Source of the DNA: Entomortierella parvispora E1425
Taxonomy: Eukaryota; Fungi; Mortierellomycota
Direction of reading: 5' to 3'
DNA length: 64,000 nt
Assembly: GCA_020891255.1 (NCBI GenBank)
Contig: BQFW01000010.1
Span: 1,116,001-1,180,000 of the forward strand
Both the position numbers and the translations under genes were made by a program. Position 1 is the stretch's first letter; each line of letters begins with the position of its first letter. The notes beneath the pieces are model-generated. The model worked only from the letters and a program-made list of their open reading frames with translations. It ran no database searches and was not told the DNA's origin. Shown piece by piece: positions 3,025 through 54,885 of the stretch.

Positions 3025-4500
3025 TTACGCTTCTAGGATCTTGAGAGTGTTGTAGAGCAGATCTGTGTACGCATCCAAAGGGCCTGGGGCACAGAACCTT
3101 GAACAGTCACCATCGCCCATCCTTCCATCAGGTCGCAAAGCAAACATCTTTTCCGTATCTAGGAAAATACCACCGGCCGCCTCGACAATGTGTTTAGCCA
3201 TCTTGTTCTGGCGCTGGATATCTGCCAAAGTAGGGCGGAACACCATCTTTGGATCTTCGTTGTCCTTTGTCCGTTCTGGCGACTGGTCCAGAGGTGTCTG
3301 AAGCATGGTTCCAGGGACGGTGGACCGGCCATCCTTCCCTGCCATTGCCTCATCTTCGCCTGCCTCCTTGAGTGCTGTACAGTTGTTGGAGACTGGGTGG
3401 GTGGCGCGATAGATGAACATGGTCTTTGGGTAATACCTCCAAAGGTATTTGATCGTGAACACCAACTCGTTCAAAAATTCCTCGTCCGGACGCCAGACTA
3501 AGCCCTTGTTCAATAGCACAATGTTGTACTCTTGCAATAACTCATCCGTAGCCCAAGGTTGCTCCACAGTTGACGCACTCGGAAACTCCTCCTTCTCTGG
3601 ATCAATGGCCCATGGTACTGAGATGACGTCGTTTCTTGAAAACTTCAAATTGGACGTTGCACACAGCTCATGAGGACTCCGGTGTAAACAGCCAAGTTCA
3701 CCATGGCACACAAACGGCTTCTGAACCGCACTCAAAAGGACATCGTGAAGTTGATACTGCGTCACGTCGCCCACGATCATCAAATTACGCTGTCTGAGTA
3801 CCCGGCAAAACTTTGCGGCCTCGAATGGCTCATACACTGTCGAGGGTGCAGCCCGGACCTTGGAGAGAGGTAATTGTCCGCAAATGGTCTCGTTCGGCAC
3901 CCACTTGTACTTTGTTGCTTCTCGAACCACCCATCGATCGTTTTTCGCATCCAGCTCGCCAAGATAATGTACATGGCCTTCTTCACCCTCATGCGCCTGC
4001 GCTTCTTGATCCAAAGACTCCATGAATCGTCCATCGCAACGACTAAAGCGACTGTCGCCGAGGTGAGGTATCCCCGGAGGCTTTGTGAGTGCGTGCCCGT
4101 CTATCCGAACCCATGATCCATTTTGTGTCCAGCACTGGATCTGGTCTCGAATCTGTTGAGCTCGTTCCCTGGTCTGGCCTTTGATCGTGGCTCCGTGGAT
4201 ATTATGAGGGATATCCTTGCCAAAGACCCGAAGCGCCTCTACTTGGACAATCGTGTCGGAAAGTTTGTCCAGGATGTCGAGCTCCTTGAGTGAAAGGGGC
4301 ACGGTGGGGTGTCTGTTCCGGACAGGGTCACCAAAGCTACCGCCGCTCATGAATGCCTCGTTGCTGCTGTCGCTGCTGTCGCTGCCACCAATACCAGGAA
4401 TATGAAAGGATGTACGGTAATAGATTCCCAGTTGGATGAAGATTATGCATGCAAGAAAGCCAACAATGGGCCTAGCGCCCATTTCTGGGAGAGAATGCAT
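3025..4500 (-). CDS. Type II membrane protein with TBL/PC-esterase-like (SGNH-related) domain
   Basis: N-terminal TM helix (IVGFLACIIFIQLGIYY). TBL-like layout: C..GSWV, YKWVPNETIC, FCRVLRQRNLMIVGDV (cf. LRGKxLxFVGDS) and C-terminal DCSRFCAPGPLDAY (cf. DCxHWCLPGxPDxW). Confidence 0.65.
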   Translation of the reverse strand: MHSLPEMGARPIVGFLACIIFIQLGIYYRTSFHIPGIGGSDSSDSSNEAFMSGGSFGDPVRNRHPTVPLSLKELDILDKLSDTIVQVEALRVFGKDIPHNIHGATIKGQTRERAQQIRDQIQCWTQNGSWVRIDGHALTKPPGIPHLGDSRFSRCDGRFMESLDQEAQAHEGEEGHVHYLGELDAKNDRWVVREATKYKWVPNETICGQLPLSKVRAAPSTVYEPFEAAKFCRVLRQRNLMIVGDVTQYQLHDVLLSAVQKPFVCHGELGCLHRSPHELCATSNLKFSRNDVISVPWAIDPEKEEFPSASTVEQPWATDELLQEYNIVLLNKGLVWRPDEEFLNELVFTIKYLWRYYPKTMFIYRATHPVSNNCTALKEAGEDEAMAGKDGRSTVPGTMLQTPLDQSPERTKDNEDPKMVFRPTLADIQRQNKMAKHIVEAAGGIFLDTEKMFALRPDGRMGDGDCSRFCAPGPLDAYTDLLYNTLKILEA

Positions 4501-38619: not shown

Positions 38620-41157
<2,538 letters not shown>

Positions 41158-41764
41158 GAGGATGTGATGTGTCGTGCGTGGGTCAGTCTTTTCGGAGGAC
41201 GATTGGACGAGAACACAGGCAACAGGGTGATGCAGAGAGGGAAATGAGGAGAAGCGATGTGGAATCAGGGCAAGCGGGGGCAGCTGCACTGGTCTGCTCT
41301 CTGTTCTTTTTTTGAGGAAGAACGTCGATCAGATAAGACACGCACGTGACCATTATATGTTCCCCGTGTCGTCCCGTCCCGTCCGTGTCCCGCCGTGCGG
41401 TCACTGACCTGACACAGCGACAGGGACGGCGATCGGTGGCGCCAGGATGGGCGGGGCGAGCAAGAGAGGGCGAGCGAGCGAGCGAGCGACAACACAAAAA
41501 GAAGCCAAAAGAAGATCATCTCTCTTTTTTTCGTTTCTCTTTTTTTCTTTCAACTCCTCTCTCCTCTCTATCCCCCGCGGTCGAATTCATAATGTAACTA
41601 TCTGCGCATCATCTATACTTCACATGCTCTTTCATTGCCGCTGCTGTTGTCCTTCCTGTCTCTTGCTGCTGCTGATCAGGCCCCACCCTGCCTGCTGCCG
41701 GCCCTGAATTCTTTATTTTTTTTTGTTTCTTGTAATGTTTTCTGCGCAGGTTCATCTCCTTTAG

Positions 41765-43517
<1,753 letters not shown>

Positions 43518-46238
43518 ACGTGCCCTCCTTCTGGGCTTGTTCAGAAAGAACGAAAAAAAAGTTGCATTACCCACGATCCCAAATTTGTAGATAGACAAAA
43601 AATAAACAAGAATTTTACGCATCAAATAACACATACCATAGGGCTTGGCGTCACCATGCAGATATCAACAGTCGGCTCGGCTCTTTATACTACAGGAACA
43701 TGCACAGTCTCGACAGACAGAGGCACGCGTCTATGATGATCCCCCTTCTTTTTTTGTGCCTCAGCCATTCACCGATATAGGTCTGCCCCTGCCCTCGCCT
43801 TCATGCCTCCTTGTACTTCGTAGTTAGCCCCATTTCAAAGTCTCAGATGACCCCATCCATTGGAGTGGCGATATTATTTTAAAACTTCTCAGTTTTGCTG
43901 GTAAGCACAAGTTTCTAGTCAGGGTGAGTTGATTCTTCCTCAAGGAAAAGGAGTTCTATCGCCTGCCTACGCGATCTATAATAGCTGCCCTTGACATACC
44001 AGACTTCGATACTCGCACAGACTGATACGATCCCTGTTCTTCCGTCGACGGTACCCGGGCAAAGATGATGAGGGAGCAAGAGACGACGATGGCTCATGCA
44101 AACGCAATCGGATGCTGTGGAACCTTGTTGGCTTTCAGAAAGTCAAAGCGCAGGGCGTAGCCTGGACAACGGACTATTGTTGCTATCAAAACGGCACATA
44201 TTCTCCGCATGTCCAAAGAATGCTCAGAGCGATTGTTCCTTCTCCATCTTGAGAGTCGGCGCCAACTAGTTTATCCTGCCACCTCCTCGTAGCTTAACAA
44301 AGGGCGTCCAATCGATCTTTCCAAAAGTCTTCGTGAGTCTTTCGTAAGATGAGCCAAAGAGCGAGGTTTCTCCCCCCTTCGTCAATGAAAAAAAAATAAG
44401 CCTGTCTCTTACTATTTCACATCGTGAGCAATAATTGTGCTTGTTCCAGTCCACTCAAGCATAGGCTAGGATACCATGTACGTATTGGTCGTAGTTTGCT
44501 CCATAAATCTGTTTGTAATGCGGACCGGACCTTTGCGATGCCAGGTACCAGAAACATGAAAAATTGGTGGCGTCGTGACGTGCTTTCATTTTGGTGGCAA
44601 AAGAATACTGTCCACGAACTTTTGCTCAACATAGTGGAGTACAACTCTTTGTCGTTACTTTTCGTCCGCACAACACAACTTTTTGTCCGCACAGCTCGTT
44701 CCAGACAATAGGGAACTATGGTATTGAGTATCTAATCTCTCTCTTCTTGCGCTCGTTGGATGCCCTTCTTGGAATGGGGGGAGTGAGTATCTGCTTCTCA
44801 TGACGTTCCAACGAAAACTCTCGCCTTTTTGTCCCAAAACGACCAGGAGATCTTTTTTTTTTTTTTTTTTTTTTTTTGCGTCAAATAAAAATGATCCCTT
44901 GCATCAGGCGCGAACCAAGGTGACACAAGTCAATCGTTTTCTTTTAAATTCATTTCTTTTTCTTTTCTTTATGGGGCATCCATACTGGGCACTTGCGGTG
45001 ATTCGTCCCCCCCCGCGTGGTTGTCTTATTTTCATTCATTTTACAAGAAGAAGGGAACCGTGGCGGGAGCATAAAAAGGGTCGGTGCGGTAACCAGAACA
45101 TGTTTCAGGTACCTTTCAGGTCATGAATCCTCCTCATTTTCATCCGAAGATTTATTCAAAGAGCGAGTCAGGAAGAGAGTGATGAGAGACAAACGAGAAC
45201 AGGCAAGGGCATGTCTTGACGTAAAGTTCTAAGAAATGACAATGTCAATAAAGAGAGTTTTTTTTTGGCCGTCGGAAGCGACAGGAAAGGGATCTGTCAA
45301 AAAAAAAAAAATAAATAAAAAAAAATGATGTAAGGAAGTTAACGCGTGCGGAAGGCGAAAGACCTTTCTTAAAAGAGGCTGTTGGTATTTATTGCTTTAG
45401 ACTATGAGAGACCACGTGTGAATAAAAGAGGTCGTCGAAGAATAGAACAAAGACTTTTGAAGTGCAGTGGACATTGATCGTTCGATTTGCGCAAAACGGG
45501 GACAAATGAAGAAAAAACAAAGAGAAAAAAAAGTCAAAAAATAGTTATGCCTGGGTCAATGTGTGGGAACGGAAAAGCCCTCCCATGGTGAGGATAAAAA
45601 CAGGAATTGAGGAAGATCAATTCTAGAAGCGGACCTTGGACCCACAGGATCTGATTAGGAGAGCTTTTGCACTTTCAACACGAGACCTTACGACACGGCG
45701 AACGGGTAAATTAGGAAGAGGATCCATACAGTAAAGCGATGGTGCCCAGATCACCACTGACAACAGAAAGAATTTGAGAAAGACAAAAACGAAGAAGAAC
45801 ATTGAGTTGGGTTTAAATCCGTCCATCTTTGTGTTTTGCTAGATCTGCAGAACAAAAAAAAAAAAGAAAAAAAAGGGGGGTGGGGTGGGGTGAAGTTGGT
45901 CGAACAAGCTGTTGACAAGGTCACTCATCTGTGTGCACCTTTTTGTGGTCAAGAAGATCTTGCGTGTTGTGTCATCATATGAAGACATTGGAGAAAAAAC
46001 CAACAAAACTGCATCGTTGTTCAACACAGAGCCTGCGGCGCTCAGCGCCTTTGCTCATCTTCAAGCCACCCCTTCAGTGAAAGAGCGCGGGGGACATGAG
46101 TAAGCAAGGTCAGTGTAAGCGACCCAGAGGAAAAAGGAGAACGCAAGAAAGAGAAAGAGGTCTCACACGGAGAGAGAGAGAGAGAGCTGTTCAGTGAATG
46201 AACTTTAATTCGTCGTTTTTTTTCTCAGGCCAGGTGAG

Positions 46239-46692
46239 TTATCAGATTGAAAAACACAAGCCTCGACGCCCTCGACTCATCGTGCATACCCGGGTAAAGA
46301 AAGTCTGAGAATGAGCCAAACAGCAGAGGGAAAAACAACCAAACAGCTAAGGGCAGAGCGGAGTGCGTTCGTGCCTGAACCTAATTGCGCAAAAACTAAA
46401 AGAAGCAGAACACTTGGAACAGTCCATCTACAACATACTGTACCCAGGAAGGCCGCTCTCGCCCCTCCCCGGGGTTTTTTCATGTTGCTGAATGAACGAG
46501 TGAGTTATCAGATCGAAAGAAATGGCGGAGGGGGGATTTGAGGCCCAGCCGGGTGAAGTGAGACGACAAACAGAAATCAACCGTTCCTGAATCAATCAGT
46601 TCCTCAGTCACTCAGTCACTCAGTCACTCAGTCACCCACTCAGTCACCCACTCAGCTCGCCTTCCTTCGCGCGCGCCAAAGGGATCTGATAA
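46239..46692. promoter_or_regulatory. Three exact ATCTGATAA GATA elements (46239-46247 minus, 46505-46513 minus, 46684-46692 plus) upstream of the repeat surface-protein gene
   Basis: Read directly from the sequence. They match the ATCWGATAA consensus of iron-responsive GATA repressors (SreA/Fep1/Sfu1 class). A TATATAA follows at 46807-46813. Confidence 0.7.
46603..46655. repeat. Tandem array of CTCAGTCA octamers (five full copies, two CCCA spacers)
   Basis: ctcagtca x4, ccca, ctcagtca, ccca, ctcag, located between the second and third GATA elements. Confidence 0.85.
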
Positions 46693-46918
46693 CAGGTGCC
46701 ATTGCGGAATGGAATGCCTTTCCCCCGCCTGCTTTCCACGCCCGCCGTTTTCACAGTCGATGATCAGTCTGGCCCGGTCTGGCCAGGGTCAGAGCCAGCG
46801 CAAACATATATAATCTCGTGTCGCCGCTTTTTTTTCTTTTCTCTTTTCTTCTGGTCCCCTGGTTTCCCCTTCTCGTATTCCCTACCCCCTTCACCTCAAT
46901 CGAACAACAACCACCGCA

Positions 46919-49900
46919 ATGCATCTCGCTGCAGCTGTTGTTGTCGCCTCTTTGGCGGCGGTTGCAAATGCTCAGTCAGCATACTTCCCATTCACACCTG
47001 AAGGTTCTTGCGTTTCTGGATGCACCAACGTAAGTCTCCCTTCTATTGCTACTGCAGCCCTTAGTCGCTCCTCTCAGTTACCATATTCGCGTCTGACTTT
47101 CAGCGATCTGTCGTGCATGGAACAGCCCTCTCTAACGTCGATGCTTCCTTCTCTGCATGGAACAATAGTCTGTCGGAAAGGCCATCTTCGATGGATACGA
47201 CGATCTGGATGAATATGGACCTAACTTCATCAAGTCGCTCTCATTCACTTTCGAGCGTGGCACTCCCAACACTGTCGCTTTCATGACTAAGGCTGGTATG
47301 TGCATGGGCAAGTGCCCACAGCCTGAGTTGGATCTGTACACTGATAACTACCCTATCAAGCTGGCCTGGTACAACTCCCACAAGGGCGACACACCTCCCG
47401 CTCGCCCAGTCTCCACTACCACTACCACCACCACCACCACCACCACCACTATTGTAGCCCCTACCACCACTACCGACACCCCAACCACCACCACTGCTGC
47501 CCCCGTGCCTTCCCCTACCTTCATCTCCGAGTACTTCCCCTTCTTCCCTGATGGCCCTTGCGTTTCTACATGCTGTCTTGTAAGTATTTACCATGTCTGC
47601 CATCATCACTGCCTCCAAATATTCTTCCAGTTCTCTAATGTCGCGTTGAAATCCTTAGACTGCCGGTCTCAGTTTCTTCCCCAACTACACTGAGGATCCC
47701 ACGAGCCCTTACTTCTTGGAGTCTCTTTCTTATACCTTCGAGCGCGGTTCGCCAAAGACCCAGGCTTTCATGGCCAAGTCTGGTCGCTGCATTGCCTCTT
47801 GCCCCAAGCCCGAGCAGGAGCTTTACCAGGGACAGTACAACTCAAAGTTGGTTTGGTACCAGTCTAAGGTCCCTGTTGCCTCTCCTACCCCCACCACCAC
47901 TACGACCACCGTCGCTCCTGAGCCCACTGTCGCCCCAGTTGATCCCGCCTACCCCTTCCAGCCCAACGGTGCCTGCGTTTCTGGATGCACCAACACGGTC
48001 GGTGTTGCTATGTTCCCCAACTACTCTGAGGACCCCAAGTCTCCTTACTTCATCGAGTCTTTGTCGTACACATTCGACCGCGGTTCCCCCAAGACTGGCG
48101 AGTTCATGACCAAGGCCGGTATGTGCATGGGCAGATGTCCTCAGGCTGAGCTTGATCTCTACACTGAGCAGTACCCTGCTCAGTTGGAGTGGTACAATGC
48201 CCACAAGCCCACTGTCACCGAGGCACCCGTCACCACCACCACCGAGGCACCAGTTGTTCCCACCACCACCGAAGAGCCTGTTGTCCCCACTGAGGCTCCA
48301 GTCACTACCACCACCACCACTGCTCCCGAGCCCACTGTCGCCCCAGTTGACCCCGCCTACCCCTTCCAGCCCAACGGTGCTTGCGTTTCTGGATGCACCA
48401 ACTCTGTTGGAAAGGCCATGTTCCCCAACTACTCTGAGGATCCCAAGTCCCCTTACTTCATTGAGTCCTTGTCCTACACCTTCGATCGCGGCTCTGCCAA
48501 GACCGGCGAGTTCATGACCAAGGCCGGTATGTGCATGGGTAGATGTCCTCAGCCTGAGCTTGACCTCTACACTGAGCAGTACCCTGCTCAGTTGGAATGG
48601 TACAATGCCCACAAGCCCACTGTCACCGAGGCACCCGTCACCACCACCACCGAGGCACCCGTCACCACCACCACCGAGGCACCAGTTGTTCCCACCACCA
48701 CCGAAGAGCCTGTTGTCCCCACTGAGGCACCAGTCACTACCACTACCACCGCTGCTCCCGAGCCCACTGTCGCCCCAGTTGACCCCGCCTACCCCTTCCA
48801 GCCCAACGGTGCTTGCGTTTCTGGATGCACCAACTCTGTTGGAAAGGCCATGTTCCCCAACTACTCTGAGGATCCCAAGTCCCCCTACTTCATTGAGTCC
48901 TTGTCCTACACCTTCGATCGCGGTTCCGCCAAGACTGGCGAGTTCATGACCAAGGCCGGTATGTGCATGGGCAGATGTCCCCAGGCTGAGCTTGATCTCT
49001 ACACTGAGCAGTACCCTGCTCAGTTGGAGTGGTATAACAACAATAAGGGCGGCGTTGTCCAGCCCACCACCACTGAGGCTCCTGTTGTCCCAACTGAGGC
49101 TCCAGTTACCACCACTACCACTGATGCCCCCCAGCCTACCGTTGGACCCGTCAACCCCGCTTACCCCTTCCAGCCCAACGGTGCTTGCGTTTCTGGATGC
49201 ACCAACTCTGTTGGAAAGGCCATGTTCCCCAACTACTCTGAGGACCCCAGCTCTCCTTACTTCATTGAGTCCTTGTCCTACACCTTCGATCGTGGTTCCG
49301 CCAAGACTGGCGAGTTCATGACCAAGGCTGGTATGTGCATGGGCAGATGTCCTCAGGCTGAGCTTGACCTCTACACTGAGCAGTACCCTGCTCAGTTGGA
49401 GTGGTACAACAACAACAAGGGCGGCGTTGTCCAGCCCACGACCGGTCCCGTTACCACCACCGACGCGCCTGTTCAGCCCACCGCTACCACCACCAACACC
49501 CCCGTTGTCCCCACTGGCGGCCCTGTCAACCCTGCTTACCCCTTCCAGCCCAACGGTGCCTGTGTTGCTGGATGCACCAACACTGTCGGAAAGGCAATGT
49601 TCCCCAACTACTCTGAGGACCCCAGCTCTCCTTACTTCATTGAGTCCTTGTCCTACACCTTCGAGCGCGGTTCCGCCAAGACTGGTGAGTTCATGACCAA
49701 GGCTGGTATGTGCATGGGCAGATGCCCCCAGGCTGAGTTGGATCTCTACACCAACCAGTACCCTGCCCAGTTGGAGTGGTATCTCAAGAACAAGGGTGGC
49801 GTTGTCCAGCCCACGACTGGCCCTGTTACCCCCACCAGCACTACCACCAGCACTCCTACCGTTCCCACTGGTGGTCCCATTACTCCTCCCACTGGCGGCT

Positions 49901-51435
49901 TTGACTACCCCTTCAAGCCCAACGGCGCCTGTGTTGCTGGATGCACCAACTCTGTCGGAAAGGCCATGTACCCCAACTACTCTGAGGATCCCAAGTCCCC
50001 CTACTTCATTGAGTCTTTGTCCTACACCTTCGATCGCGGTTCCGCCAAGACTGGCGAGTTCATGACCAAGGCCGGTATGTGCATGGGCAAGTGCCCTCAG
50101 GCTGAGCTTGACCTCTACACTGAGCAGTACCCCGCTCAGTTGGAGTGGTATAACAAGAACAAGGGCGGCATTGTTCAGCCCACGACTGGCCCTGTCAACC
50201 CCACCACTACCACTGGTAAGCCCACTGTCCCTACTGGTGGTCCCGTTACTCCCCCTCCCGGCGGCTTCGTCTACCCCTTCAAGCCCAACGGCGCCTGTGT
50301 TGCTGGATGCACCAACTCTGTCGGAAAGGCCATGTTCCCCAACTACTCTGAGGATCCCAAGTCACCTTACTTCATTCAGTCCTTGTCCTACACCTTCGAT
50401 CGCGGCTCTGCCAAGACTGGCGAGTTCATGACCAAGGCCGGTATGTGCATGGGCAAGTGCCCTCAGGCTGAGCTTGACCTCTACACCGAGCAGTACCCTG
50501 CCCAGTTGGAGTGGTATAACAAGAACAAGGGCGGAGTGACCAACCCTGTTGACCCCACCAACCCTGTGGATCCCACCAACCCTGTGGACCCCACTAATCC
50601 CACTGGTCCCATCACTCCTCCTCCCGGCGGCTTTGACTATCCCTTCAAGCCCAACGGTGCCTGTGTTGCTGGATGCACCAACTCTGTCGGAAAGGCCATG
50701 TTCCCCAACTACTCTGAGGATCCCAAGTCCCCTTACTTCATTGAGTCCTTGTCCTACACCTTCGATCGCGGCTCTGCCAAGACTGGCGAGTTCATGACCA
50801 AGGCCGGTATGTGCATGGGCAAGTGCCCTCAGGCTGAGCTTGACCTCTACACCGAGCAGTACCCCGCTCAGTTGGAGTGGTATAACAAGAACAAGAACGG
50901 AGTGACCAACCCTGTTGACCCCACCAACCCTGTGGATCCCACCAACCCTGTGGACCCCACTAATCCCACTGGTCCCATCACCCCTCCTCCCGGCGGATTC
51001 GATTACCCCTTCAAGCCCAACGGCGCCTGTGTTGCTGGATGCACCAACGAGGTCGGAAAGGCCATGTTCCCCAACTACACTGAGGATCCCACGTCCCCTT
51101 ACTTCATCGAGTCCTTGTCCTACACTTTCGAGCGCGGTTCCGCCAAGACTGGCGAGTTCATGACCAAGGCCGGTATGTGCATGGGCAAGTGTCCCCAGGC
51201 CGAGCTTGATCTCTACACCGAGCAGTACCCAGCTCAGTTGGAGTGGTACCTCAAGAACAAGAACTTTGGTCAGATCAACGGCACCTTGACCGCCACCGGT
51301 ACCGCCGTTGTCTCGCCCACTGGCCCCGTTGTCTCGCCCACCAACACCCACGATAGCAGCGCTGTCAAGTTTGCTACCTCGGGTATTGCTGCGACCATCT
51401 TGGCTGCCCTTTGCGCGGTCGTTGTTGCCATTTAA
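46919..51435 (+). CDS. GPI-anchored cell-surface protein (~1432 aa) with 11 tandem ~85-aa 4-Cys domains and T/P/E-rich linkers; join(46919..47029,47169..47579,47659..51435)
   Basis: Signal peptide MHLAAAVVVASLAAVANA; unit YPFxPNGACVxGCTN...FMTKAGMCMGxCPQxELDLYTEQYPAQLEWY; GPI-type C-terminus DSSAVKFATSGIAATILAALCAVVVAI; two phase-0 GTAAGT..TAG introns. Confidence 0.88.
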
Positions 51436-52148: not shown

Positions 52149-54885
52149 ATGAGCGTAATCCAGGACGACTCTGACACCATGACGGCTTCATTCTCCGCGG
52201 CCCCAGCCGTGGCCCCGCCCTTTGAGGTTAGCGACCCCTGGGGCGCTACCACAGCTAGAGGATTGAACCCGTTAGACTTGAGCAACATCCTGTGTAGGTG
52301 ACAGTCTCTTTCACTGAGACCAGCTGGAATGGGTCCCATGGGGAAGTTTTTTTGTGCCTTTTGTTCAGCAACTCTAACAGTCGCTTTTGTATCTTGTCGC
52401 TTTGTCGCCACCAACATGGGGATTCTTGTTACGTAGCAGGAATGCCCTTGCCAAGTATCTACACCACCGCCTTTGATCTGGCCCAGCCCTCAGGCGGAAA
52501 GATCACAGTGTCTGCTATCCACAAGATTGTGGCTGTCAGTGGATTGCCGTCTGCATCAGTGAATCAGGTACCAACCAATAGACTGTTTGGATTGCCAAGG
52601 ATACTTCATACCGATGATGAGGTTCTCACTAGGAAGCAGAGGCAACAAGTACTCAAAATAATAATCCTCTTGATGGTCATAGATCCTGAACATCGCTGTG
52701 GCGCCAACCCGATCAAGGATCTCCAAGGGGGAGTGCAGCGTGACGTTGGCCCTTGTGGCAATGGCCCAGAAGAATATGGATCTGTCGATCGAGAATCTGA
52801 TTGCGCACCGGGAAGGTAATAGCGGGAAAAATACAACTCTAGTCACTCCCATTGCATTGAGGTGCTTGTCGAGTACTGATATCTTTGTTGTTATTGCGTT
52901 TGTTTAGACCTACCCATTCCCCATCTGCCAGGTCTCGAAGCGATTGACTTTGGTAGCGCCAGGGAGACCAACATTTATGCAACGAGTTCGACGCTGCCCC
53001 TTCAACACCACCCTGTTCACGTGGGTAGTGCAGTCTCGGATCCTTGGAGAAGCTCCGTGGTATCCACTCTCAAGAATGGCAGTGGAGGATACCCACCTGC
53101 ACCCTCAAGCTTGGCATCCCCGCCCATTACTTCGGATCAGATTAATCGGGATGCAGACCCGGAGATAACCCGCAAGGATATGTACCAATGGTTCTTGCAC
53201 CTGGACACGATCAGGATTAGCTTTGCCCCCGAGAAAGAAGGCATCTTCTTATTTAAGCATACCAACTACATTGTGGAGTCAAAGGTAGAACGGAGAATGG
53301 GGAGTATGATGGATATTTCATTGTTCTCTGTCAGTTTCGCTAATAGTGTTTTACTCTCATTCATAGAACCGACAAACGACTGTCATCAGGAGATATAGTG
53401 ATTTTTGGTGGCTGCTGGAGGTCCTTGCCAAGCGATTTCCTTTCCGAATCTTGCCCAACCTGCCACCCAAAAGACTCGGAGGTAAAAATTGCAGATATAT
53501 GATGTAAAGCGACTGCTGTGAGAACTCCTTGCGTTTATATTAACCCGTCTCTTTCATTTATTTAGTGGCGGACGAGGCATTCCTGGAGCGCCGACTGAGA
53601 GGTCTGACCCGATTTATGAACGCGCTGATGCGTCACCCTGTCCTCAAAAACGATCCGTTGGTGATTTCCTTCTTGACAGAGCCAGTCGTAAGTCTATTTC
53701 CAATTTTTTTTATTTTTTTTATTTGATCAGCTGGAGGACATTCTTTGACCTGACCGACCTTCGAACATGCTTTTGTCAACTGCTTATATCCAGGAACTGG
53801 CTCTTTGGAGAAAGAATGTAGTCATTTCGACCGAGGACGAGTTCATTGCCAAGATACCCATTTCGGAGACACTCTCGAAGCAAATTCCCATGACTTTGGA
53901 CCTGGAGTTGGAAACGATTAAGAGACGCTTGCCTGCTTCGATTGAGTATTACCGAAACATGGTTCATGTTTTGGATCGTGTCCAGAAGAGAACCGAGGCC
54001 AACGCTGGAGATTATACCCGATTCAGTCTTTCGATCAAGTATGCCCAAGATTTTCAATAGGATCCAAGGATTTAGAAAGGATCACCTGAATGCCGTATGC
54101 CCTGAAATGGTTTTGCTGATACTAAACAAACCCATTTCTTTTTCTTCCTTTAACTAGAGCCTTGGCTGATTGTGAGAGGCAATGTCATATTGAAGAATGT
54201 TACAACTGCGGACAGTTGAGTCATGGATATGACAGGATAGGAACGCATCTTCAACAAACTGGAAACTTGCTCGAGCATGAGGCCCGGGATACACGTGAGG
54301 GCATGGTCGAAAGTTTGAAGCGTCATCGGGACTTGTTGGTCTCTGTGAAGGAGCTGTTGTTAAGGCGAGACCACGCACGAGACATGGGCAACATGACCGA
54401 AGTCTTGAAGAGAAGAGTAACGGCTAACGAGGCCAAGCTGAAGACGCTCAGAGCCTCGGCTGCGACGGCTGCTAACGCTGCAACATCGAACAACGCCGAC
54501 CCTGCTGCAGCGGCTGGAATTTACGATTATCAGATCGAGAAGGTCCTTCACAACATCCACTCGGTAAGGACTATTAATCCTCTAGCAAGAAAAAAAAAAA
54601 AAAAAAAAAAAAAAACGAAATAGACTCTCTAACCTGTCCTTTTTTTCTTTTACTCGCTCTCAGGATCAAGCAGAATTGGAAATCCAAGCACAGAGGGCTA
54701 TCTTGGTTCAACACACGCTCTGGATGGAGATTACTTTTTTCCACAAGAACCACGCGTTGATTGCGGGCATGTATCAGGCCTTTGTGCACGAGCAGATGAA
54801 GACGAGTCAGAGTCTCTTTGACAACTGGAAGTCGCTTTCGCCAGTTGTTCATGATCTCCCCATGGATGTGAATGGATTCAACTGA
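52149..54885 (+). CDS. MVP1: Sorting nexin Mvp1/SNX8 (PX-BAR); multi-exon
   Basis: [48 protein letters not shown] and [12 protein letters not shown], followed by a BAR-type helical C-terminus. Confidence 0.9.

Follow-up and report, generated by a model that had tools for sequence, protein, structure and literature searches.

The locus studied here raises the question of whether a group of ATCWGATAA boxes, lying upstream of a gene for a repeat-containing surface protein in a Mortierellomycete, belongs to an iron-responsive GATA circuit, and of what the product of this gene might do for the cell. The first-pass annotation of the window (the whole 64-kb stretch of DNA analysed) had reported three perfect GATA boxes in this promoter, and an exact-motif scan of the window found them as described: ATCTGATAA occurs at positions 46239-46247 and 46505-46513 on the minus strand and at 46684-46692 on the plus strand, i.e., 680, 414 and 235 bp upstream of the ATG (46919), in agreement with the interval of about 230-680 bp given earlier. 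The sequence likewise bears out that each promoter box extends to a 10-mer (GTTATCAGAT or ATCTGATAAC). The two distal boxes (box 1, 46238-46247; box 2, 46504-46513) both read ATCTGATAAC on the minus strand, and the proximal box 3 (46684-46693, plus strand) reads GGATCTGATAAC and stands about 115 bp before the likely TATA box. Boxes 1 and 2 lie in a common 19-nt context, GTGAGTTATCAGATYGAAA, at 46234-46252 and 46500-46518, and the flanks beyond these 19 nt are unrelated, so that the pair is not a segmental duplication. A fourth copy of ATCTGATAA, at 54527, is located in a gene for a sorting nexin (Snx8/Mvp1), inside a coding exon. When the dinucleotides of the window were shuffled, the mean was 0.36 copies per 64 kb, close to the earlier estimate of about 0.5 exact 9-mers, and at least four copies occurred in none of 100 shuffles. 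Furthermore, in the 2.5 kb upstream of the repeat-protein gene, all three WGATAA cores carry the ATC prefix.

When either base was accepted at the W centre of the motif, the scan of the window added a single site, ATCAGATAA at 41328-41336, a number within chance expectation. This site lies between two divergently transcribed genes, one for a diflavin reductase (39117-41289, minus strand; FAD_binding_1, Tah18/NDOR1-like, Tah18 operating in cytosolic Fe-S assembly) and one for a thioredoxin reductase (41789-43517, plus strand).

The thioredoxin reductase gene is separated from the repeat-protein gene by an unusually long stretch of 3.4 kb (43518-46918), which is AT-richer and gene-poor, contains long poly(A)/poly(T) runs, and holds no recognisable gene and no ORF matching the repeat-domain family. 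Between boxes 2 and 3 lies a (TCAGTCAC)n microsatellite (46592-46655), which is much shorter in a close metagenomic relative (L009), showing that the spacing of the boxes is not fixed. Downstream of box 3, a TATATAA element (46807-46813, plus strand), read from the sequence as the likely TATA box, is followed by a CT-rich leader region, and the ACATATATAA block of this TATA/leader region is also present in L002, L003 and L009. The gene itself, on the plus strand, comprises three exons. Exon 1 (46919-47029, 95% identical in L009) encodes the signal peptide and the start of repeat 1; exon 2 (47169-47579) the remainder of repeat 1, a Thr-rich linker and the start of repeat 2; and exon 3 (47659-51435) repeats 2-11, the Thr/Pro linkers, a hydrophobic C-terminal tail resembling a GPI signal, and the stop codon. 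The two introns (47030-47168 and 47580-47658) have GTAAGT...TAG borders, and the first one, placed after CTN/CTD, occurs at the same position in a 116-aa single-domain paralogue from Linnemannia (L001 and L003).

The three exons join into a stop-free coding sequence for a protein of 1432 aa, with a signal peptide, 11 copies of a domain of about 85 aa, Thr/Pro-rich linkers and a GPI-like tail. Each repeat of the window protein has four cysteines, arranged as two CxxxC pairs. At the C-terminus, read by eye from the translation, a stretch of small residues precedes a hydrophobic tail of 16 residues, in the manner of a GPI signal; together with the signal peptide and the Ser/Thr-rich stalks, these are the features of GPI-anchored fungal wall proteins. 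The earlier description of the product as a surface protein thus appears sound as far as the translation can tell: it is predicted to be secreted, Cys-rich and GPI-tailed, and it belongs to no Pfam family. Pfam matches to DUF6438, DUF2865, Meleagrin and others were rejected, as no single stretch passed and the scores are the summed noise of 11 repeats. A profile search against PDB sequences gave no match. The last repeats and their NPVDPT linkers (50266-51261) are nearly identical to one another, which suggests a recent amplification or homogenisation of the repeat array.

Full-length homologues with about 60% identity occur in Entomortierella chlamydospora, Linnemannia zychae and L. exigua. 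Scoring one repeat against 1.84 billion representative proteins returned only 79 relatives, which by name belong to Mortierellaceae, many Mucorales (including Rhizopus delemar RO3G_11245), Umbelopsis, Basidiobolus and Malassezia; two long matches (Macrostomum and one other sequence) were set aside, as they look like low-complexity noise. Most members of the family are small proteins with a signal peptide, a single 8-Cys domain, a Ser/Thr linker and a hydrophobic tail, which is GPI-like in the Mucorales members too. Relative to these 8-Cys members, the Mortierellaceae repeats have lost two Cys pairs. Both Linnemannia loci additionally encode the 116-aa secreted single-domain paralogue mentioned above, divergent from the multi-repeat gene (L001, 3251-3723, minus strand; L003, 2239-2740, minus strand) and preceded by a box pair about 580 bp before its start; a divergent paralogue of this type is absent from the 64-kb window. 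A literature search for RO3G_11245 found no paper, and the hypoxia sheet of Lichtheimia Table S7, as far as that sheet was available, does not list it. The family, like the MFS transporter that often accompanies it (see below), is uncharacterised.

The presence of the motif in orthologous promoters had been named beforehand as a check on the boxes, and it was found there: in 14 of 15 informative family loci, between two and five copies of ATCWGATAA stand at most 1.2 kb upstream of the family gene, in promoters that otherwise defy alignment. The loci with boxes come from Mortierellaceae, Mucorales (including RO3G_11245 of R. delemar), Umbelopsis, Basidiobolus and soil metagenomes. Within 1.2 kb upstream, there are four sites in Sporodiniella, two in Actinomortierella, five in Basidiobolus, three in R. 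delemar RO3G_11245, three in Umbelopsis, and three or four in each of five soil-metagenome contigs. The sole exception among the 15 is the Malassezia pachydermatis locus (L014), which has no ATCWGATAA, and the Apophysomyces locus (L004), with only 39 bp upstream, was left out of the set. When the loci were pooled, 47 of 59 sites fell in the 17.4 of 198 kb (9% of the DNA) that lie upstream of family genes, a 41-fold density with a binomial probability of 8e-39; leaving out the window, which had been ascertained by the motif, 44 of 54 sites remained upstream (3e-31), both probabilities overstating independence, since the loci are related by descent. Several of the sites counted as lying elsewhere belong to the divergent single-domain paralogue of the Linnemannia loci. 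The extended form of the motif is equally concentrated: the ATC prefix is carried by 47 of 57 WGATAA cores in family promoters versus 12 of 179 elsewhere (Fisher test, 3e-28).

The Mortierellaceae promoters show how the boxes persist. In the three named loci of this family (L001-L003), all 15 ATCWGATAA sites are upstream of the family gene; a plus-strand proximal box recurs at -185 to -240 in L001-L003 and L009, and the farther boxes of L001-L003 are mostly on the minus strand. Four Mortierellaceae promoters that were compared cannot be aligned (mean column identity 52%), and MAFFT does not superpose their boxes. An unbiased k-mer comparison nevertheless found 9- and 10-mers common to all four, and these are only pieces of GGATCTGATAAC; shuffled versions of the same promoters have no 9-mer in common. 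Since the boxes are conserved as islands in diverged promoters across phyla, they are functional cis-elements of one regulator, and a 10-12-mer persisting in otherwise scrambled promoters over such distances is a clear footprint of selection. Further sites were noticed in two of the family loci. In Basidiobolus ranarum (L007), three additional ATCWGATAA copies lie within 80 bp (4181-4259), past the 3' end of the MFS gene, and may belong to the promoter of another gene. In E. chlamydospora (L002), one box (3802-3810) is located 275 bp before a Peptidase_M13 (endothelin-converting-enzyme-like) gene that adjoins the family gene.

As to the factor that binds these boxes, ATCWGATAA is the motif derived for the SreA regulon of Aspergillus fumigatus, in which the generic HGATAR is barely enriched, and the in vivo sites of Urbs1 and Fep1 also fit it (PMC2610380). 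The boxes studied here match this published consensus, as the first-pass annotation had proposed; the consensus is derived from Dikarya and the host is a Mortierellomycete, so that the binding factor is uncharacterised in the host lineage. With their ATC-extended GATA core and the multiple copies kept in orthologous promoters, the boxes resemble SreA-type operators in sequence and arrangement. In Mucorales, the GATA proteins Znf4 and Znf8 of R. microsporus have been described as SreA homologues (PMC12638772), and ATCWGATAA has been reported in silico at the rhizoferrin synthetase (rfs) promoter of Mucor lusitanicus (PMC9226013). The regulatory element is of a known kind, found in a new lineage. 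Judged from the sequences, the boxes are cis-elements of the iron-repressor type that are both conserved and functional, and that they confer iron repression is the best-supported reading, which we consider quite likely.

In many species the family gene has a transporter of the major facilitator superfamily (MFS) as its partner. One orthologous MFS is the immediate upstream and divergent neighbour of the family gene in Basidiobolus (L007), a metagenome contig (L013), Malassezia (L014) and Umbelopsis (L015), and these four MFS proteins are 32-46% identical over both halves. The locus of Rhizopus arrhizus (L016), entered from the MFS, has the same organisation: a divergent family member adjoins the transporter gene, and the 655-bp spacer shared by the two contains the only two boxes of the locus. 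Consecutive locus tags indicate that the MFS adjoins the family gene in Apophysomyces and Umbelopsis as well, and in about ten further Mucorales both genes are apparently carried by the same contig, which is consistent with pairing. The MFS partner is absent from the 64-kb window and from the Mortierellaceae loci. Of the 18,950 NCBIfam models, those of MamH and MamZ, iron-related transporters of magnetosomes, gave the best matches to each half of the transporter (E values from 3e-17 to 1e-10). Scores of 38-63 bits against cut-offs of 300-650 bits make the fungal protein at most a relative within the MFS and not an equivalog; a bacillibactin exporter and efflux pumps are among the weaker matches. 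For the Basidiobolus MFS, a protein atlas gave generic MFS names only. The iron-induced 'siderophore transporter' of Lichtheimia, LCor01340.1, was considered as a representative of the partner MFS and rejected: it is a 592-aa SIT-type protein and has no family neighbour.

The Malassezia pachydermatis locus keeps the pair of MFS and Cys-domain genes (L014, 4259-6573) without ATCWGATAA. The nearest sequences to its MFS are those of Malassezia nana and one other sequence (both 71% identical), followed by Umbelopsis (56%) and Mucorales (about 50%), a closeness that suggests either a horizontal transfer of the pair into Malassezia or its unusual retention there.

The predicted fold of the Cys domain was compared with those of known proteins. 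AlphaFold (AF2) models of the 4-Cys repeat (pLDDT 93.9) and of an 8-Cys Rhizopus domain (pLDDT 91.9) are both compact four-helix structures. Foldseek searches gave no E value of 4 or below against the PDB and no significant match against Swiss-Prot, and the best VIA Z scores against solved structures, 4.1-4.2, correspond to no convincing match. After the family's own members, the nearest named structural neighbour is CFEM, and only weakly: eight AFDB clusters of CFEM proteins have TM scores of 0.46-0.58, the first ESM Atlas match from outside the family is a CFEM protein (TM 0.55), and Csa2 (PDB 4Y7S) ranks 5 and 11 of 48,161 with Z scores of 3.7 and 3.4, values of TM (0.46-0.58) and Z (3.4-3.7) that are within noise. 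UniRef also names three members of the family CFEM, including Basidiobolus members. At the sequence level, the Pfam CFEM model (PF05730) matches none of the Basidiobolus members so named by UniRef, none of 47 members at E values up to 10, none of six full-length members at E values up to 0.001, and no part of the main exon (47659-51432) at E values up to 1. The eight-Cys spacing of CFEM is not found either, as the repeats of the window have four cysteines and the Mucorales members have eight with another spacing. Moreover, CFEM has been reported to be absent from zygomycetes and chytrids (PMC4530338). In view of the negative Pfam searches, the weak similarity of fold and this reported absence, we do not file the domain as CFEM; it is CFEM-like in architecture and may be a remote CFEM relative. 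Hence, the earlier statement that the surface protein uses a different domain family holds for sequence and is less secure for structure, where CFEM recurs, weakly, as the nearest neighbour.

Together, these data support the proposal, which we regard as probable on sequence evidence, that the locus combines operators for a SreA/Fep1/Urbs1-type repressor with a surface protein capturing an iron-bearing ligand. The three boxes would be the operators of the host's own two-zinc-finger, iron-responsive GATA repressor of this type. Under iron sufficiency, the gene would be kept off by repressor bound at the boxes, which lie 115-560 bp before the TATA box; under iron starvation, the repressor would leave them and the gene would be expressed. 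The product would be a GPI-anchored wall or surface protein displaying 11 disulfide-stabilised four-helix domains on Thr/Pro stalks. We infer that these domains capture an iron-bearing ligand at the surface, which might be ferric rhizoferrin or another chelate, heme (only one possibility among these), or Fe itself. In the ancestral and still widespread form of the system, the gene for a GPI protein with one 8-Cys domain would stand head-to-head with that of a dedicated MFS, the two sharing a box-filled intergenic region. In favour of this reading, the iron-repressed CFEM hemophores have a parallel architecture to that of the protein, whose signal peptide is combined with the Cys domain, an S/T linker and a GPI-like tail. 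That the protein serves iron acquisition is plausible, with chances that we see as about even. A further-reaching proposal, which we put forward tentatively and consider doubtful, is that the CFEM hemophores have in the four-helix Cys domain a relative older than Dikarya, or else an analogue of independent origin, and that this domain, with the MamH-like MFS, would constitute an ancestral SreA-controlled module for the capture and import of an iron ligand such as heme or ferric rhizoferrin.

Other explanations deserve to be weighed against the proposed iron-repressor operators. That the box cluster is a chance occurrence, or a by-product of local duplication with no regulatory role, might be suggested by the 19-nt context common to boxes 1 and 2, but the flanks past these 19 nt are unrelated, the expectation is only 0.36 copies per 64 kb, and the motif recurs before relatives in 14 of 15 loci whose promoters are otherwise unalignable; the cross-species data refute such an origin for practical purposes, and we give it next to no credence. 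A more substantial alternative is that the boxes are functional and bound by another GATA factor, i.e., a nitrogen (AreA/NIT2-like), light (white-collar-like) or developmental regulator, the surface family then answering that signal and not iron. Both Mucoromycota and Mortierellomycota have expanded families of GATA zinc-finger proteins, and all Rhizopus GATA factors assayed in vitro by DAP-seq bound similar regions, amino-acid, carbohydrate-transport and sulfate genes being enriched among the targets (PMC12638772), so that another member of these families could own the sites; many boxes also read GATCTGATAA, which makes a GATC-containing variant of the motif possible. The near-obligatory ATC prefix (47 of 57 cores), however, is a signature of the iron regulon (PMC2610380) and not a feature of single-finger HGATAR sites, and both the reported occurrence of ATCWGATAA at the Mucor rfs promoter (PMC9226013) and the resemblance of the neighbouring MFS to MamH and MamZ argue for iron. 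We therefore regard control by another GATA factor as unlikely.

If regulation by iron is accepted, the protein could still be something other than an uptake receptor: it might act in wall remodelling, adhesion or protection, or buffer metal or redox state through its paired CxxxC motifs, and the MFS would then be an exporter, e.g., of rhizoferrin. With its long Thr/Pro stalks and 11 tandem domains, the protein has the typical build of an adhesin or a structural wall protein, the weak MFS matches to efflux pumps and the bacillibactin exporter point in the same direction, and no fold match in the Foldseek search of the PDB or the VIA comparison indicates a binding pocket. Against this stand the recurrence of CFEM as the nearest structural neighbour and the head-to-head pairing, across phyla, of an extracellular binding-type domain with a transporter, an arrangement that one would sooner expect of systems for capture and import, like S. 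pombe Shu1/Str3 or the Candida CFEM proteins. A role outside uptake is thus a possibility that we take seriously while finding it rather improbable.

The acquisition of iron is of central importance for Mucorales and related fungi, whose iron regulation has been approached, in the literature that we searched, solely in silico or through homology. For Mucorales, that literature names as iron components the reductive FTR1/FET3 system, a single siderophore transporter, heme oxygenases and Fob1/2. In the present loci, a family of surface proteins, lineage-wide and uncharacterised, and its dedicated MFS are marked by a motif that was known from Dikarya. New here are the multi-repeat, putatively GPI-anchored protein, the statistics across phyla, the pairing with the MFS and the comparison of structures. 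These sequence comparisons suggest that the iron-GATA circuit is older than Dikarya. The surface family and its often-adjacent transporter form a testable candidate iron-uptake system, providing concrete candidate genes in the tractable Rhizopus and Mucor, for which the prediction is induction by iron chelation. Should the ancestral-module reading be true, both iron-GATA regulation and hemophore-like uptake would predate the split between Dikarya and zygomycetes, and the iron acquisition of mucormycosis agents would include two components that have gone unrecognised, RO3G_11245 and the MFS-linked Rhizopus paralogue.

Several known systems resemble parts of the one described here. In both of its halves, the fungal MFS matches the MamH and MamZ magnetosome transporters better than any other NCBIfam family, but the scores are far under the family cut-offs and the window contains no such gene. 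The CFEM hemophores of Candida albicans (Rbt5, Pga7 and Csa2) are likewise secreted or GPI-anchored proteins with small helical Cys-rich domains, and the Mucorales members have eight cysteines, an S/T linker and a GPI-like tail; they differ from the present family in that the latter has no Pfam CFEM match, another Cys spacing and, in the window repeats, only four cysteines. In S. pombe, Shu1 (a GPI-anchored Cys-rich heme receptor) and Str3 (an MFS heme transporter) are both repressed by Fep1. The present proteins have no sequence relationship with them, and their genes are paired and divergent in many species, though not in the window; the likeness lies in the combination of a Cys-rich GPI surface protein and an MFS transporter under an iron-GATA repressor, which we propose by analogy for the present family. 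As for the boxes, they differ from the operator arrays of SreA, Fep1, Urbs1, Sre1 and Sfu1 in Ascomycota and Basidiomycota by their occurrence in Mortierellomycota (and in Mucoromycota and Basidiobolus), where the repressor is uncharacterised, and by their target, an uncharacterised protein family instead of a siderophore or reductive-uptake gene. Like these arrays, however, they have the identical consensus ATCWGATAA, often as RATCWGATAA, and they are present in several copies, in both orientations, within about 1 kb upstream of the gene.
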